Shown piece after piece: positions 2,950 to 10,041 of a stretch of DNA of 64,000 nt. This DNA comes from Guillardia theta CCMP2712 (taxonomy: Eukaryota; Protista; Cryptophyta), in assembly GCF_000315625.1 (NCBI RefSeq), contig NW_005434651.1:251051-315050 (forward strand), written 5' to 3'. Made by a program: the position numbers and the translations under genes. Position 1 is the first letter of the stretch; each line of letters starts with the position of its first letter. The notes beneath the pieces were generated by a model. The model searched no databases, was not told where the DNA came from, and saw only the letters and a list, made by a program, of their open reading frames with translations.

Positions 2950-4300
2950 AAGCTCCGACTGAACTTTTTGGTCACTGAGTCTCCCTTTTAACTAGTAAAG
3001 TTAGATTTCCGCCGCCGAGTCTTGCCCACCCGCCGGGTGACTGACAGTGGCATCATGATGCGGCCCTCCCGGACCGGCGGTGACGGTGGGGGGCACTGCG
3101 GCTCAGTCTTTTTTTGCCACCCTGCTCTAACTTGTGCGCCTGACTCTTGAAGTTCCGAGGTGCCCGGCGGCCATCATGACTGCCTCTCCTGGCTCAGTAG
3201 TACCGTGTCTGTAAACTTGACGGTTGAAACGGTTCGGCGACGCGCCGCCGGGCCCCGCACGGCGCGGCCCGGCTCGGACGTCACCGTCCGACGAGTCACA
3301 GTACGGTACACTGCCTTCGGATCCCATCTTCAACCGAACGGTTCGGCGGTTTCACTTGTCCGAGTGTCAACGGTCAGTAACGGGCCTTCGACGCCCGGCA
3401 GCAATTTCCGGTACCGTCGCACCCGGTCACCAGTGACCGACCGTAGTACGTCACTGCGGCGAGTCAGGCTCCGACTGAGGCTGCCGAACTTCGGAACTTA
3501 TCGGAACCGGTGGCCCAGTGCATGACTTTGCCAACGGTCAGTTGTTCGAGGCACTGAGGCGGCCCCGTTCAGTCTCAGTACGGTCACGGTCACTGACCGT
3601 CGACACTGAGTGGCCGGTGTCACTCGGACTCGCTGAGTAAATGCGCGCAATCTGTTACTTAGTCACCGTGGCCGGGCAGTACGGTAGTAGAGGCCCCAGT
3701 GGCCAAACATGATCGGATGATCGCCGGTCAAACTGCCTTCCGAGATATTCGACCTGCAAGAGAGCACACTGGCATGCCGTCTCTACTCCACTGATCAGTG
3801 ACCGAGATATACTATGAGCCTACTTGGGATTCAAGGCCGCGCCCGCTGCAGCGCCGGTACCGGGCCCGGTATCATAGTATGAAAAATCCGGGCCAGGATT
3901 CTTGATTAGCGGTTATTATGACCGGTACTTTTGACTGCCCTTATACAGGTACTTGCCCTCGCACAGAAGCACCCTTTTACGGTAGTACCCCCCGGTGATT
4001 ATCATTCGGATTGATAGGGGGTGGGGTATTTGACTCGGAAAGGCTTATGATGGCATGGGCCGCCCGGTACTGTAACTGAACCGTTGAACCTGAGCCTGAG
4101 TGATCGCTGAGTGATACGTGTTCCGAAGTTCCTTGGAAGAGAAACTTCCGGAAGTTCAGATGCCCCCGTAATCGTCAGACCAAAAAAGACTGAGCAGTGA
4201 CGGTGGCCGGGGGCCCACCGCACTGTCACTGACCCGGCGGAATCTAACTTTAAAAAACTTGAAAGGGAGACTCAGTGACAAAAAAGTTCAGTCGGAGCTT

Positions 4301-4373
4301 CGCCCGATGTGGGGCTCGAACCCACGACCACAAGGTTAAGAGCCTTGCGCTCTGCCGACTGAGCTAACCGGGC
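4301..4373 (-). tRNA. tRNA-Lys(CTT), identical inverted copy
   Basis: Reverse complement of 2877-2949; T6 tract downstream on the minus strand. Confidence 0.97.
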
Positions 4374-4780
4374 TTATGTGTCAACTGCGCTTGACGGTTA
4401 ATGTAGCCTGATTACATACTACACTGCAAGGGGTAGGGGTGGTTTGTGGGAAAGGTAGGGTGAGAATTATGTGAAAGGCGTGGTGGGGGTGAGAAGCGTG
4501 TAGGGGTGGTGGTGAACGAGGGTGAACTTTGTTTAGGAAATGAGGAGGGGTGGGGTAAAGGGGAACTCTACAGCAATGGGGGTAGTAGATCAGGTCTCAG
4601 ACAAGGTGGGGTGAAACAATGAAGTTTGGGGGGTGGGGGGGTGGTCCTCTAAGGAAACCTCAAAATGCTCTCGATCTCCTTCTAACAACCTCCTCCTCTC
4701 CACACACGACTCCCTCCATGTTGAAACTGACCAGATTCCCAAGGGATGGTGGGCCAGGACGTTTGAGCTCGATATGGGTC

Positions 4781-5767
4781 CTACTGCTGTAATATTTGTA
4801 GATCAGACAGATAAATCGAAGGTCCAGACGTTCCCGAATCTGCTCCCCTTCCCCCAAAGAATGTCCGCATGTCCAGCAGATTCAGCTGATACAGGGGATC
4901 GGCCCTCGCCGGTAAACTAAAGACATCCCGTGAACAATGCACATGATTGACAAAAGCATCGATGGTGATGCGCATGAACTCCTTTCGAACACTTCCTTCT
5001 TCATCCTTACACGACTGAATGCCAAGACGTATTGAAAGCCTCGTCCAGACATCCCTGACGATGCTGACTGACAGCAGTCTAGTGCTCTGCACCGAGACTT
5101 CTTTATCGCCTGTCCGCAGAGGTTTGTGGAAACACTTGAGAACAAAGTTTGAGTTGCTGGTCCACCTCCAAAAGCTCCCCAGAATCTCCTCGCCCAGGGA
5201 AAAGCCAGGCAGTCGGCCTCCCTTCTCCCCGCACTGAAACCCTGCGGGAAACAGGACCTGGTACTGAAGGACGAAGTCATGTGGGAGGAGGGGGAGGCGG
5301 AAGAAACTATTGAGGCCGCCTGAGCTTGTGCTGCTGCCCCGGGTCATGCGCGGGGCAAGAGAGACCTTGAGTGCCATGGCCGACTCAGTCCCCAGGCTGT
5401 CATGGACCCCCTGAACAAGCGTGACGTTGCCAGCGTCAACTTTGACATCCGAGTCCCAGCTGGCAAACAGCTGGTGCAAGGTTGGGGTGTCGTCGAGCGA
5501 CGGAAAGCCTTGCCAGATCACTTTCCCGGTCCTTCTCAACTCGTCCATCCCTTGACCTTCCACCTCACTTGCAGTCTCAGAGCCCCTGCTGCTCATCTTC
5601 GAGCGATCCGCCAGCCCGTAGGAAGCGGCGAAGAAAAACTCCTCCTCCTCTGTCATCTCGACTCTTCGCTTGCTAGTGCTGGGCGTGTGAGGCATCGAGA
5701 GGAAGAACCCGCCAGTGAAAACCGACCAGCGCAGAGCCTCGCGGGAGAGTCGCCTGTGGTCAATATT

Positions 5768-5813
<46 letters not shown>

Positions 5814-8091
5814 TCTCACCTGAAAGCCGAGACCTTATCAGCGTACGGATGTCGAAATCGCGTGTCATAGAGCGGAGGGTTCAGCGCTTGCATGACTCGG
5901 GTGGAGACTACGACGTAGGGCTCGAAGCCGTCCTCGTACTCGATGTCATAGGAGGAGAGGTGGTCTGGGTGGAACAGCTGCACCCACTTTTCAAAGTCAG
6001 TCGCTCCATGGCCTTCCCTGTAATGGTCCAAATGGAAGCCGCGGATTTTGCTGGCATGCATTAGAGCCGCCATCTCTCCCCTCGCTGCTCTCAGAATGCT
6101 GCTGACGTCAGACACCCTAGAGGCCTCGAACGTTGGGACCACCAAGACAGTCAGCTCGTCCTTTTGGGAGCTCGAAAGGAACTTGTCTAGCCTCCTTGCA
6201 AGGCTATGGGAAGGGAGCAGGTCCGCGTCCACCAGCAGACTCCACTTCGTCTCCACCACCGCCAGCCCAACCTGCGCGTTCCAACTCAGTCACCATGGGG
6301 ACATTCTTCCTGCTAACCGATCGCACGAGGTTGGACGGATAGCGGCCCCGCGTCAGTGCAGAGAGCGAATTGCGGTCCATTGCCAGAGTGACAATCCGCA
6401 GCTGCCCCTGACATCCTACGAGGCTCAAGGATACCAGCCATCTCGCACAGCAGGCAAGAAAGCGTCCTATGAAACCGTCGGGAACGAGGATGGACAGGAC
6501 GGCGTTGTCGTTCCAGTGCCTGAGCTGTCGGATCGCACCGACAAGGTGGGAGAGTGAGCAGTGGGAGACAGCTGTGATAGCCCTGCTGCTCAACTTGCCG
6601 TAGGTTGTCAGCTGCTGGGAGTGATGCTGGACAAGCTCGTACTGGTGTGTAAAGAAGAAAATGTTCCGAAGTACCCTCCCAGTGCTCCGATGGAGAATGT
6701 CAAAGAAAGGAGTTGCTGTGCGAGTCAGTTTCCTTGTCATCATGGCGTGTAGGGAAGCTCTCGAGTGCTGGTACACCTTGAAAGAAGCCGTCAGGGCTGC
6801 GATGATACTTTCTCCTCTTCACCTTTTGGTCTCGCCAGAGCCCAAGTGGTCCAGGTAAACCTTGACCGCAATACTTGTCGAATTGAGGGCAATAGCAACA
6901 AGTGCGAGAGAAAGGATCGTTCCTAACGATTTCCGCCAACTTCATGTCGAGATGTTTGATTTGCTCCAGCCTTGAGTTATTCTCCCTGTCGTAGAACTCC
7001 TGAGCATCCCTCGACAACTCATGCTCTTGGTGCACGACGTACGCTTTGAAGCAGACCTGCGCACCTTCAATCAGGAAACGGCAGCGAAGGCTCGCGAGCC
7101 AAACACCCGGAAATGAAACCCTTGCACCGCCATCCGTCGAATGTGCGACACTTTGTTCCTACATCATCATCATCATCTCTTGCTCAACAACAATCACCGT
7201 CATCTCACCTCCCGTAGCCCTCGTACCTCTCATCGTACGCGGGAACCATCCACCTGCTGCAGTACTCAGCGGAGGGAGCGAGGAAGAGAAGGAAGCTCTG
7301 CCTCGAGACTATCACGTAGGGCTCAAATCCTTCCTCGTACTCTATCATGTATCCTGCCTTCCATGTCAGTGTGTACTTCAACGTTCGCTCACATTCCCGC
7401 CATTCTCCAATCTACCTTCGATCGACTCGCACGCTGTCCATAGCTCCCTCACTCGTTCTGCCGCGTGTCCTGTGGGAAACTTTTCTGTCTGGAATCCTAT
7501 CACCCGAGTTTTCTCAAGATCCTCCTCGTGCAGAAGCTTCTTTGCCATCTCATAGTCTCCTAGCACATCCTCAAGACTGATCGCCTCGCCTCCCCCCTTC
7601 TTCAGCTCCAGCGCAGGTACCACGATGGCGTTTCGCTCGACACAGCACCACCTCCACAGCAGCATCAAGATGTCTTCTTGCTGCAGCAGGGCAGAGAAGG
7701 TGACCGAAGGCAGCTGGTCCACGTCGCACAGGAACACAAGGTCGGTGCCGGCATGCGCGAGAGCGATGTTGCGCATGGCGTTGATGGGATACCGTTCGAA
7801 GTGAAGCTCGTCCTCCCAGACTGCAACGATCTGAGTGATGTCATGGCTACTCTGCTGCAGCTCCTGCACGCCCTCGTGGAACTCAGAGGACTGCGAGCTC
7901 GGAACCAGGACAGCAGCTACACAAGGGCCTGCCCACCGGGGCCGCAAGACCAGGAGGGAGGAGAACTTGTTCCAGCTGAGCTGGGTGACTAGAGTCACTC
8001 CCTTCCTCTGCTCTTCCTCTTCACTCTCCTCCTCCTCCCCCGCCTCCTTCTCCTCCTTCCTCCGCCCTTTCTCCTTTCCGGATCCAACCAT
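4781..8091 (-). CDS. Fusion protein: GT49 (LARGE/B4GAT1-like) + second GT49 + PL14-like polysaccharide lyase domain; 5' end unresolved, probably upstream of 8091
   Basis: GT49 motifs occur twice (VTLVTQLS..W.GP, YPINAMRN, CDVD, IEYEEGFEPY, PAYDERY; ITAVSHCS..W, YPSNLVR, VDAD, IEYEDGFEPY, PLYDTRF). PL14-like motifs: YQVLFPAGF...GGRLPG, WTRL, TFFGG, IYLSDL. ORFs join in frame across short introns (e.g. 5754-5819, 7254-7301). Confidence 0.8.
5771..5812. repeat. (CAG)14 microsatellite inside the 5754-5819 intron
   Basis: Direct. Confidence 0.95.
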
Positions 8092-8715
8092 TGCCCACGG
8101 TCTATCAAGTACCCACCCCAGAATCTAAAACAGGTAGGAATAACGAGGTAGGGTGGTGAGATGCGAATCGATAATGGCGAAGAGGGCGGAGGACGGGGAC
8201 GGGGAGGAGGGGGAGGGGGAGGCTGCAAGGGAGCGAGGAAGCTAGGAAGAGCTGGTTAACAAGTGGCATACCCATCATGTTGGTTGATGTTGTGCGAGGA
8301 AAGTCTGCTGAAAGTGCTTCATCGCTCAGAGGCCTCTAGCAACACGTTCGAGGCAGGAGAAGTGAATGTCGAGCTGGTCGAACCCTCTGATGTCTGATGC
8401 CCTCCTTGCCGTCTCCGCGTCCTCATTCTCTTTGTGAGAACCTCTAGAACATAAAGAGCAGCTGAGGAGCAGCTGAGGAGGGTAGGTGCAGTCGAGGGCT
8501 CGGCCTGGAGATTTTGGAGGCCGCACGTGCGGTCCAGCAAAGGAGGAGAATCTGATGTGATACAAATGAGACTGTGGTGACGTGCTAACGATACTCTTCC
8601 TATTCCCCTCCCTCCTCTCTTCTCATCTGCCTCCCTCCTCTCTCCCCTATCCCTCCCTCCCTCCCTTCCCCCGCTCCCCCTTTCCCTTCCCTTTCCCGTT
8701 TCTCCATGCAGGGCC

Positions 8716-10041
8716 ATGGCGGAGATCGGACACCATGCGGAGTTCGGGGCGTCTCACTCCTCCTACTACACCAAAGCAGAGGCAAAGGAGCACTACCCTA
8801 GCCTCGACGAAGTGCTCGGGAAGAAGATCGAGGACGAGGACGTAAGGGAGCTGACCAAGGAGCTGCTGGAGGCTTCCTCGAGAGTAGGAGACGCTCTCCG
8901 TGTGAACCTGGCGACTGTCGCTGCATCGCAGAACTCTGTGTTTGGCGATGTCCAGCTGGCGCTAGATGTCATAGCGGACAACATTCTGTGGGAGGCAGCC
9001 AAGGCATGCAAGCTGATCAAGGAGGCGGCGTCTGAGGAGGAGCCGAAGCTCGTGGAGACCAACCCCAACGGCAGGTTCACCGTCTGCTGGGACCCACTCG
9101 ACGGCTCCTCCATCGTCGACAATAACTGGGCGGTAGGGACGATCATCGGTAAGCGAGCAGAGCTTGCTGGGGTTGCGCCAGTAACGTCAGCGGATCAGGC
9201 GTGTGGGACAAGACGACAGGAATGCTGGGAGCGACGGGAAGGGATCAGATCACGGCGATGGTGGTCATGTACGGGCCGCGAACGACGGCTCTGATAGCGT
9301 GCGACGACGGAGTATACGAGTTTACTTGTATCACTGAAGATAGGTGGATAGCGTCAAAGGAGAAGATCAGGATCAACAAGGTTCGACGTTGATGTTGTTG
9401 GTGGTGATTGCGACCGTGATGGTGATGGTGATAACAACGAACATCAACATGAACATGAGGGGAGCAGGTGAAGAGAAGGATGTCCAGGAGTAGGAGGAGG
9501 GAAAGAAAAGTGGTCGAGATGATATGGACCATAGTGATGAAAGCCTTCAAGACAGCAACAGCAGCAAGGTTTTGTCTCTTTTCCCTCTGTTCTGACTCTC
9601 TTGCTTCAGGAGTCCAAGATCTTTTCACCAGCCAACCTCCGAGCCTGCGCCGATCTTGAAGGATATGAAAAGCTCGTCAGTTACTGGATGCACAACAGAT
9701 ACACTCTTAGGTACACTGGTGGACTCGTGCCCGACGTCTACCAGCAGTTCACCAAGGAGATGGGAATTTTCACCAACCCGAGCACGCCCAAGTCCCCAGC
9801 AAAGCTCCGACTCGCCTTTGAGGTGGCTCCGTACGCCTTCCTTGTGGAGAAGGCGGGAGGTTGCTCCTCCGACGGCGTCACCGGCAACTCCCTGCTGGAC
9901 TCCAAGATCGAGGCCGTTGATCAGGTTAGGAGACTTGACGCTAACCGGCACTGAGCGCCATGGCAGAGGACGGCAGCGTGCTTCGGATCAGAGGTGGAGG
10001 TGAAGAGATTCAACGAGATGGTATTGGGCAAGACAAGGTGA
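8716..10041 (+). CDS. SBP: Sedoheptulose-1,7-bisphosphatase (FBPase class I family), 4 exons
   Basis: Motifs FGDVQLALDVIAD, ASEE, WDPLDGSSIVDNNWAVGTI, YGPRTT, FSPANLRA, YTLRYTGGLVPDV, KLRLAFEVAP. Introns 9149-9198, 9381-9609, 9925-9966; stop TGA 10039-10041. Confidence 0.9.

Follow-up and report, generated by a model that had tools for sequence, protein, structure and literature searches.

We analysed a 64,000-nucleotide stretch of the genome of the cryptophyte Guillardia theta CCMP2712 (NCBI RefSeq assembly GCF_000315625.1, contig NW_005434651.1, positions 251,051 to 315,050 of the forward strand; hereafter the window, to which all coordinates refer), in which the minus strand at 4781–8091 holds a spliced gene for a 980-residue protein. 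The protein carries two glycosyltransferase domains of family GT49, followed by a C-terminal domain that appears to descend from the polysaccharide lyases (PLs) of families PL14 and PL36. This domain has lost the residues with which such lyases cut, so it probably serves to bind sugar and is less likely to be a lyase built into the protein.

One spliced transcript for three domains

We aligned public sequence data (contigs and reads) over window positions 4200–8900. The 2,928-nucleotide (nt) contig of run X2 spans 4660–7955 and contains all seven intron joints, and contigs of runs X4 and X1, which come from other studies, contain subsets of these joints, so that spliced joints are present in three runs of three studies. 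The stretch is contained in 15 runs of six studies, none of which (0 of 15) is recorded as RNA; we take the X1, X2 and X4 contigs to derive from RNA because they carry spliced joints. Once their bounds had been corrected for ambiguous bases, the introns measured 46–66 nt, and their removal gives a stop-free open reading frame (ORF) of 980 codons that runs from the ATG at 8091 to the stop codon. We conclude that one spliced mRNA covers both GT49 domains and the C-terminal domain. An initial annotation, made from the sequence alone, had proposed a single transcript for all three domains, and this is borne out as far as the assembled transcripts show. It had also placed an intron at 5754–5819, which is indeed spliced out in the contigs, and the junction peptide that it predicted, ...DKVSAFRRLSREALRWSVFTGGFFLSMPHTPS..., is present in the spliced ORF. 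The six further introns (introns 1 to 6 below) had not been listed. The gene is laid out as follows.

4781–8091, minus strand: whole coding region, eight exons, 980 codons plus the stop codon at 4781–4783; spliced ORF built from transcript-supported joints
7416–8091, minus strand: exon 1, with the ATG at 8091, an acidic low-complexity N terminus and most of GT49 domain 1 (PF13896, 64.4 bits)
7354–7415, minus strand: intron 1, 62 nt, GT–AG; joint seen in X1, X2 and X4 contigs
7302–7353, minus strand: exon 2, GT49 domain 1, EYEEGFEPYV block
7254–7301, minus strand: intron 2, 48 nt, GC–AG (non-canonical donor); joint 7252/7301 in X2 and X4
7209–7253, minus strand: exon 3, from transcript joints and the spliced ORF
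7159–7208, minus strand: intron 3, 50 nt, GT–AG; from transcript contigs
7107–7158, minus strand: exon 4, from transcript joints and the spliced ORF
7057–7106, minus strand: intron 4, 50 nt, GT–AG; from transcript contigs
6823–7056, minus strand: exon 5, end of GT49 domain 1 (VVH284-Q-E-H287) and linker
6777–6822, minus strand: intron 5, 46 nt, GT–AG; joint in X1, X2 and X4
6318–6776, minus strand: exon 6, linker and N-terminal half of GT49 domain 2; aligns with domain 1
6272–6317, minus strand: intron 6, 46 nt, GT–AG; joint in X2 and X4
5820–6271, minus strand: exon 7, core of GT49 domain 2 (PF13896, 77.8 bits; LARGE1, E = 1.5e-6)
5754–5819, minus strand: intron 7, 66 nt, GT–AG; holds a (CTG)n run and is removed in transcriptome contigs
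4781–5753, minus strand: exon 8, end of GT49 domain 2 (FFLS676-M-P-H679), acidic linker, PL14-like domain and stop codon
4660–4780, minus strand: 3' untranslated region; contigs end at 4660–4670 and 3'-tag-like RNA reads pile up at 4671–4827

The position where the contigs stop, together with the pile of RNA reads at 4671–4827, places the 3' end of the gene there. These reads come from one RNA-seq run (2026), in which reads fall at the 3' end of the gene. At the other end, an in-frame TAG at 8122–8124 lies upstream of the ATG, and we saw no ATG between 8222 and 8092.

The fusion is extremely unlikely to be an artefact in which read-through, or chimeras in the assembled transcript contigs, had linked two or three neighbouring genes. 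Logan contigs do form chimeras at the low-complexity sequence of this locus, as their loose ends at 8040 and 8222 show, but a single contig crosses 4660–7955 with seven precise splice joints and 980 codons free of stops, the same joints are found in three runs from three studies, the sequence between the domains holds neither a start nor a stop signal, and the ORFs for the first and last domains share a transcript label in Hanusia phi, a cryptophyte and the sister of Guillardia theta. The same loose ends had raised the candidate of an upstream signal-peptide exon, which we rejected: none of the three tails occurs in the 64-kb window. Of the two at 8222, the X2 tail maps to a different contig of the genome and the X1 tail matches nothing in the genome. 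The ends at both sites fall in low-complexity sequence rich in GAG and CT, and we interpret them as chimeras of the assembly graph.

The Hanusia evidence extends to the details of the gene. A word search and a search of 1.84 billion representative proteins each returned a single relative of the C-terminal domain, from Hanusia phi, at 54% identity, and the closest relative of GT49 domain 1 is also from Hanusia phi (EukProt), at 72% identity. The Hanusia ORF for GT49 domain 1 (P0122) runs into a retained intron exactly at the site of Guillardia intron 1, and its N terminus begins as in Guillardia, with acidic low complexity; the ORF for the C-terminal domain begins at the Met that directly follows the site of Guillardia intron 7. 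Both ORFs bear the same transcript label (ORF numbers.5 and.2; EukProt P045090 and P045087). The shared label indicates that the same fused gene is present in Hanusia, as judged from its first and last domains, the parts of that transcript that were read. A scan of the Guillardia genome assembly (87.1 Mb, 669 contigs) found the C-terminal domain in this one copy and nothing else that resembles PL14. More distantly, an environmental eukaryote (L155:351-2203; JGI metagenome 3300042313) encodes a protein with 41% identity to GT49 domain 1, on a sequence that ends before any second domain could appear. This relative has LWRWCC and RW-V-AYDERY-GYGRNKV blocks in common with domain 1, and an intron of about 940 nt, against introns of 48–62 nt in the corresponding part of the Guillardia gene. 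The double GT49 with a lyase-like tail is a new, lineage-restricted architecture made of known families.

Several other observations concern the transcript and its surroundings. The length of intron 2 (48 nt) is a multiple of three, so an alternative isoform is possible, in which retention would add 16 residues and keep the frame. Intron 7 consists mostly of (CTG)n, and on the plus strand this stretch reads as a poly-Gln ORF. In the 2026 RNA run, reads over 4671–4830 are confined to the 3' end of the gene, and their first mates map to the plus strand; short, unrelated tags of 9–11 nt precede 4661–4673, and three reads have non-templated poly(A) after 4830. The run looks like a 3'-tag library, the alternative being a short, polyadenylated antisense RNA from the plus strand. 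A small upstream ORF on the minus strand (8222–8290; ATG at about 8278) has a hydrophobic, signal-peptide-like start; its frame differs from that of the main ORF, and it stops short of the main ATG. The divergent neighbour, at 8716–9294 on the plus strand, is a gene of the FBPase/SBPase family (PF00316, 80.6 bits), with transcript contigs that begin at about 8709–8713 and a splice donor at 8727; the intergenic region between the two genes is about 500 bp.

Two GT49 domains in tandem

All searches with the 980-residue protein were run per exon or per domain, and families were scored on three minus-strand ORF pieces (7378–8091, 5816–6259 and 4781–5695). Both domains scored well above the Pfam cut-off of 27 bits for PF13896 (Glyco_transf_49), domain 1 (ORF 7378–8091) with 64.4 bits (E = 1.5e-17) and domain 2 (ORF 5816–6259) with 77.4 bits (E = 1.7e-21); exon 6, scanned by itself, had no Pfam match. 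In PDB searches both matched the glucuronic acid (GlcA)-transferase (GT49) domain of human LARGE1, domain 1 with E = 1.7e-10 (7ZVJ) and domain 2 with E = 1.5e-6. The initial annotation had described two GT49-like domains, each with a DxD motif (CDVD and VDAD), and this description holds: FLCDVDQLP of domain 1 and LLVDADLLP of domain 2 align with FLSDIDFLP of 7ZVJ/7UI6, and the motifs lie at the following positions.

7717–7725, minus strand: DxD of GT49 domain 1, Asp123-Val-Asp125 (CDVD, residues 122–125), aligned with LARGE1 D563-I-D565
6221–6229, minus strand: DxD of GT49 domain 2, Asp521-Ala-Asp523 (VDAD, residues 520–523), aligned with LARGE1 D563-I-D565

In LARGE1 the DxD is Asp563-x-Asp565, Mn is bound by this Asp-x-Asp together with a His, and His708 is described as an 'extra' His (PMC9746966). 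The C-terminal metal block of domain 1 reads VVH284-Q-E-H287, with both His kept, and the FEPYV core is kept in both domains. Domains 1 and 2 share 30% identity (E = 8e-19) and are each other's best match among the GT49 genes of the genome, which points to the tandem pair as an old internal duplication.

The genome holds at least 12 further GT49 loci (23 exon-level matches). We read four of these paralogs through the N terminus or the flanks, and all four are single-domain proteins, two (L002 and L004) with signal peptides and two with long flanks. The first, canonical His of the metal block is kept in all G. theta GT49 paralogs that we read. The further loci (L002–L012, on contigs C217, C35, C39, C45, C21, C330, C242, C268 and C43) are mostly intron-poor ORFs of about 750–1,000 amino acids with one GT49 domain each and long repetitive flanks of unknown fold.

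We found no signal peptide or transmembrane segment in the 980-residue protein; its best 19-residue window scores 1.67 and lies inside the GT-A fold. The type II signal anchor or signal peptide expected of a GT49 enzyme of the Golgi lumen is thus missing, and the N terminus is acidic low-complexity sequence in Guillardia and Hanusia alike. With a signal peptide and a membrane anchor absent from the N terminus in both species, the protein may act on the cytosolic side of a membrane instead of in the Golgi lumen.

A lyase-derived domain and its former active site

The initial annotation had called the C-terminal domain PL14-like. By Pfam alone the call falls short: the C-terminal ORF (4781–5695) scored 25.6 bits (E = 1.1e-5) against PF21294 (Polysacc_lyase_14), below the cut-off of 27 bits and over about 30 aligned residues (profile positions 42–71), and the Hanusia domain scored 23.6 bits, also below the cut-off. 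The summed PF21294 score in the genome scan was 27.3 bits. As the Pfam match is sub-threshold and about 30 residues long, the label needed profile–profile, language-model and structural evidence, which we obtained for the features listed here.

4784–5527, minus strand: PL14/PL36-like beta-jelly-roll domain, residues about 733–980; from hhalign, protein-atlas features, AlphaFold (AF2), Foldseek and VIA
5204–5221, minus strand: GGRLPG motif, residues 835–840; GGKLPG in PL14, with the catalytic Lys replaced by Arg837
5129–5143, minus strand: strand expected to hold Tyr-x-Tyr; reads V-L-K-C-F, residues 861–865, with the Ser-x-Arg upstream deleted

A language-model feature search of a protein atlas placed the domain with PL14 clusters (score 0.96, 195 shared features). 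For comparison we gathered genuine PL14 domains by going from a 16S pattern to bacterial genomes and then scanning, with the family model, 401 genomes of the phylum to which a Lentisphaera genome (G001) belongs; 19 of the 401 contained PL14. The collected domains match AkAly30 (5GMT) at E = 1.3e-33, and also match Aly36B and vAL-1. Some verrucomicrobial members (in genomes G085, G299, G368 and G101; loci L143–L146) lie within open frames of 876–1,106 amino acids, as parts of large multidomain bacterial proteins. When the Guillardia–Hanusia pair was aligned with 13 bacterial PL14 domains by hhalign, the match had a probability of 77.5% (E = 1.9e-5, 163 columns) and covered the domain from its opening strands to the FFGG motif at its end. 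PDB sequence searches with the domain or its two-sequence profile gave no relevant match, and a scan of viral contigs with the domain profile found no relative.

An AlphaFold model from the two-sequence (Guillardia and Hanusia) alignment was unusable, with a predicted local distance difference test score (pLDDT) of 29.8; a 26-sequence alignment gave a model with pLDDT 72.8 and a predicted template modelling score of 0.77. Foldseek matched this model to the PL14 structure 5GMT (E = 5.5e-10), and VIA-align ranked 5GMT (Z = 18.8), the PL36 structure 6KCV (Z = 18.1) and the PL14 structure 3A0N (Z = 17.8) above the jelly rolls of GH131, GH16 and lectins (Z = 13–15). A fold search of the ESM Atlas returned a PL14 cluster with a template modelling score of 0.72. 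On the combined evidence the domain belongs to the PL14/PL36 lineage: remote homology and the predicted fold uphold the initial call, and the family score (25.6 against 27 bits) does not.

We then placed the lyase active site on the domain. The 13 diverse bacterial PL14 domains have in common the set Lys / Ser-x-Arg / Tyr-x-Tyr, with spacings of 24, 2, 12 and 2 residues; its Lys, its Arg and its first Tyr never vary, and its Ser and second Tyr are nearly invariant. On the 5GMT sequence the set falls on chain residues 111, 138, 140, 152 and 154, which correspond to AkAly30 Lys99, Ser126, Arg128, Tyr140 and Tyr142 by a 12-residue offset. These five AkAly30 residues are said to have proved essential in the mutational work of Qin et al. 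of 2017. The offset was fixed on the Cys115–Cys124 disulfide and Gly118 that are named for AkAly30 (PMC8618178). According to the same review, PL14 enzymes work by a Tyr/Tyr mechanism and PL36 enzymes use a Lys as both base and acid (PMC8618178). The PDB entries of Aly36B trap substrate with the K143A/Y185A substitutions, which by sequence comparison hit the Lys of GGK and the first Tyr of the set.

None of the five residues (0 of 5) could be placed in the C-terminal domain by hhalign, by MAFFT with 24 PL14 proteins or by HMMER with the family hidden Markov model. The catalytic Lys (AkAly30 Lys99; Aly36B Lys143) is replaced by Arg in both species (Arg837 of the Guillardia protein); the Ser-x-Arg site (AkAly30 Ser126/Arg128) falls inside a deletion of 11–15 residues in the hhalign and MAFFT alignments; and the Tyr-x-Tyr positions are taken by Lys863/Phe865 (hhalign) or Val861/Lys863 (MAFFT), with no Tyr within 10 residues of the expected positions. 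The HMMER alignment stops directly after GGRLPG-x3-G-x-E. The Hanusia ortholog has the same substitutions at the catalytic site. The initial annotation had proposed a uronate-polymer synthase, a putative function extrapolated from the two characterised GT49 activities, and had given it its own lyase, with a binding module as the reading should the lyase catalytic residues be missing; they are missing, and the idea of a lyase fails on that account. We conclude that the domain is almost certainly not a canonical lyase.

That an active PL14 lyase would trim or release a uronate polymer built by the GT49 pair, in a self-contained synthase with lyase comparable to AlgL in bacterial alginate synthesis, is accordingly very unlikely by our estimate. 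The chemistry would be coherent, since characterised GT49 enzymes add beta-GlcA; PL14 includes beta-1,4-glucuronan lyases (PMC11890756), 3A0N is vAL-1 with bound GlcA, and Arg serves as base in some unrelated lyase families (PMC8618178). The domain descends from PL14, and its GGxLPG motif and the flanking strands are strongly conserved between Guillardia and Hanusia. Against this stand the loss of the whole active-site set and the sub-threshold family score, when even the weakest bacterial PL14 matches retain Tyr-x-Tyr; and we know of no beta-jelly-roll lyase that uses Arg as base.

The part of the domain that is best conserved between Guillardia and Hanusia is the block at the former cleft, FQCGxKGGRLPG ... 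FWRWTSNSNFVxKCxHKP, which has many Arg, Lys, Trp and His residues where PL14 has Lys / Ser-x-Arg / Tyr-x-Tyr. This conservation fits better with a retained binding site for an acidic sugar than with a decaying remnant. A near-invariant block in a domain that is 54% identical overall also points to a constrained site. This might be the site of an enzyme with a new activity that would use the cluster of Arg837, Lys834, Lys863, His866 and Lys867, for example an epimerase of uronates, a hydrolase or a lyase whose catalytic residues have moved. The related PL36 has already switched mechanism from Tyr to Lys, and the fold is common to GH131 hydrolases. Such an enzyme would be without precedent, however, and the cluster offers no identifiable pair of catalytic acid and base; a binding site would show equal conservation. 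We hold a new activity to be quite unlikely.

Proposed function and known systems

We give slightly better than an even chance to the following interpretation: the 980-residue protein would combine two tandem, inverting GT-A transferases of family GT49 with a non-catalytic, PL14/PL36-derived glycan-binding module. Each GT49 domain would transfer a sugar from a UDP-sugar with inversion, the sugar being GlcA by family precedent (LARGE and B4GAT1) for both domains, and the pair might make two successive or alternating additions, by analogy with the two-headed LARGE1 or K4CP. The lyase-derived domain would no longer cut; it would bind the acceptor or product glycan, probably an acidic one, and keep it close to the transferase sites, much as the lectin domain of ppGalNAc-transferases does.

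Several points weigh against this interpretation. Glycan binding by the C-terminal domain is drawn from its descent and its conserved basic and aromatic residues only, and the fold match depends in part on the homology already assumed, because the alignment given to AlphaFold was seeded with PL14 proteins. HMMER does not align the second half of the domain, which has diverged too far, so that a shifted or relocated catalytic residue is conceivable. GlcA as donor sugar, and with it the beta-linkage, is a family-level guess from the characterised enzymes LARGE and B4GAT1. On the 5' side, the gene is resolved up to 8222, with contig coverage that ends near 8222–8281. Finally, the metal block of GT49 domain 2 reads FLS676-M-P-H679, with the second His kept (H679, at the position of the 'extra' His708 of LARGE1) and Ser676 in place of the first, canonical His that LARGE1 and the G. 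theta paralogs have. The Ser at a canonical metal-binding position makes domain 2 the less certain catalyst, and it may be inactive.

This last point would fit the view that the protein is an ordinary single-activity transferase, with only one catalytic GT49 domain and with the C-terminal domain as a ligand-free structural or vestigial appendage, perhaps for oligomerisation or stability. There are precedents for GT-A proteins of two domains in which one is dead (GLT25D1 and B3GLCT), and the C-terminal domain is far diverged from every other PL14, with its one match among 1.84 billion representatives. Yet the DxD is intact in both GT49 domains, and the best conserved block of the C-terminal domain is the former active site, which would not be expected of a mere spacer. 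We regard this view as unlikely.

A further scheme, which we consider a long shot, is a signal-less, self-contained polymerase, in which two divergent GT49 heads would alternate on an acidic (GlcA-containing) glycan at the cytosolic side, and the PL14-derived domain would serve as a processivity clamp or length ruler for the nascent chain, or would still cleave it by a non-canonical Arg/Lys mechanism. If true, no earlier glycan synthase of a eukaryote would have contained a lyase-derived module of its own for handling the product.

To our knowledge, GT49 biochemistry comes only from animal dystroglycan glycosylation, and in the gene described here a tandem duplication of a GT49 domain is combined with a module derived from a lyase. 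If the C-terminal domain does bind the product glycan, as in the interpretation that we favour, it would show clearly how a polysaccharide lyase can be reused as a lectin attached to sugar-building enzymes, and it would offer a handle on an acidic surface or matrix glycan of cryptophytes. A dbCAN- or Pfam-style annotation as 'PL14' would wrongly predict lyase activity for this protein.

Among the closest known systems is LARGE1/LARGE2, the matriglycan polymerase with a GT8 xylosyltransferase and a GT49 glucuronyltransferase, which, like the Guillardia protein, has two GT-A domains in one polypeptide. The DxD, YP-N-RN, H-x-T-F-KW and FEPYVVV blocks of the LARGE1 GT49 domain are common to both Guillardia GT49 domains. 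Unlike LARGE1, the Guillardia protein has GT49 twice, in copies 30% identical to each other, and no GT8; it lacks the coiled-coil stem and the type II membrane anchor, has the extra lyase-like domain at its C terminus and has Ser at the canonical His of domain 2. B4GAT1, a GT49 beta-1,4-glucuronyltransferase, shares the Pfam/CAZy family, the inverting GT-A fold and the DxD; it is single-domain and Golgi-anchored, whereas the Guillardia protein consists of a tandem duplication with an appended domain.

For the C-terminal domain, the PL14 lyases AkAly30 of Aplysia (5GMT) and vAL-1 of a chlorovirus (3A0N/3GNE) are the best structural matches, at the Z scores of 18.8 and 17.8 given above, and have the beta-jelly roll, GGxLPG, an N-terminal W-x-D-W strand and a C-terminal FFGG in common with it. 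Identity is about 17–18% to the solved lyases by structural alignment and 15–22% to bacterial PL14 proteins. PL14 lyases are secreted stand-alone enzymes or viral wall-degrading enzymes, whereas the Guillardia domain is fused behind glycosyltransferases. The fold of the PL36 enzyme Aly36B (6KCV/6KCW/6KZK) is equally close (Z = 18.1); its use of Lys143 of GGK as base and acid shows that the PL14/PL36 lineage can change mechanism. Aly36B keeps Lys143 and Tyr185, and the Guillardia domain has neither. Two further systems are functional analogies only, from unrelated families: the ppGalNAc-transferases (GT27 with a ricin-type lectin domain), in which a transferase carries its own glycan-binding module, and the bacterial two-domain polymerase K4CP, in which two GT-A heads alternate.

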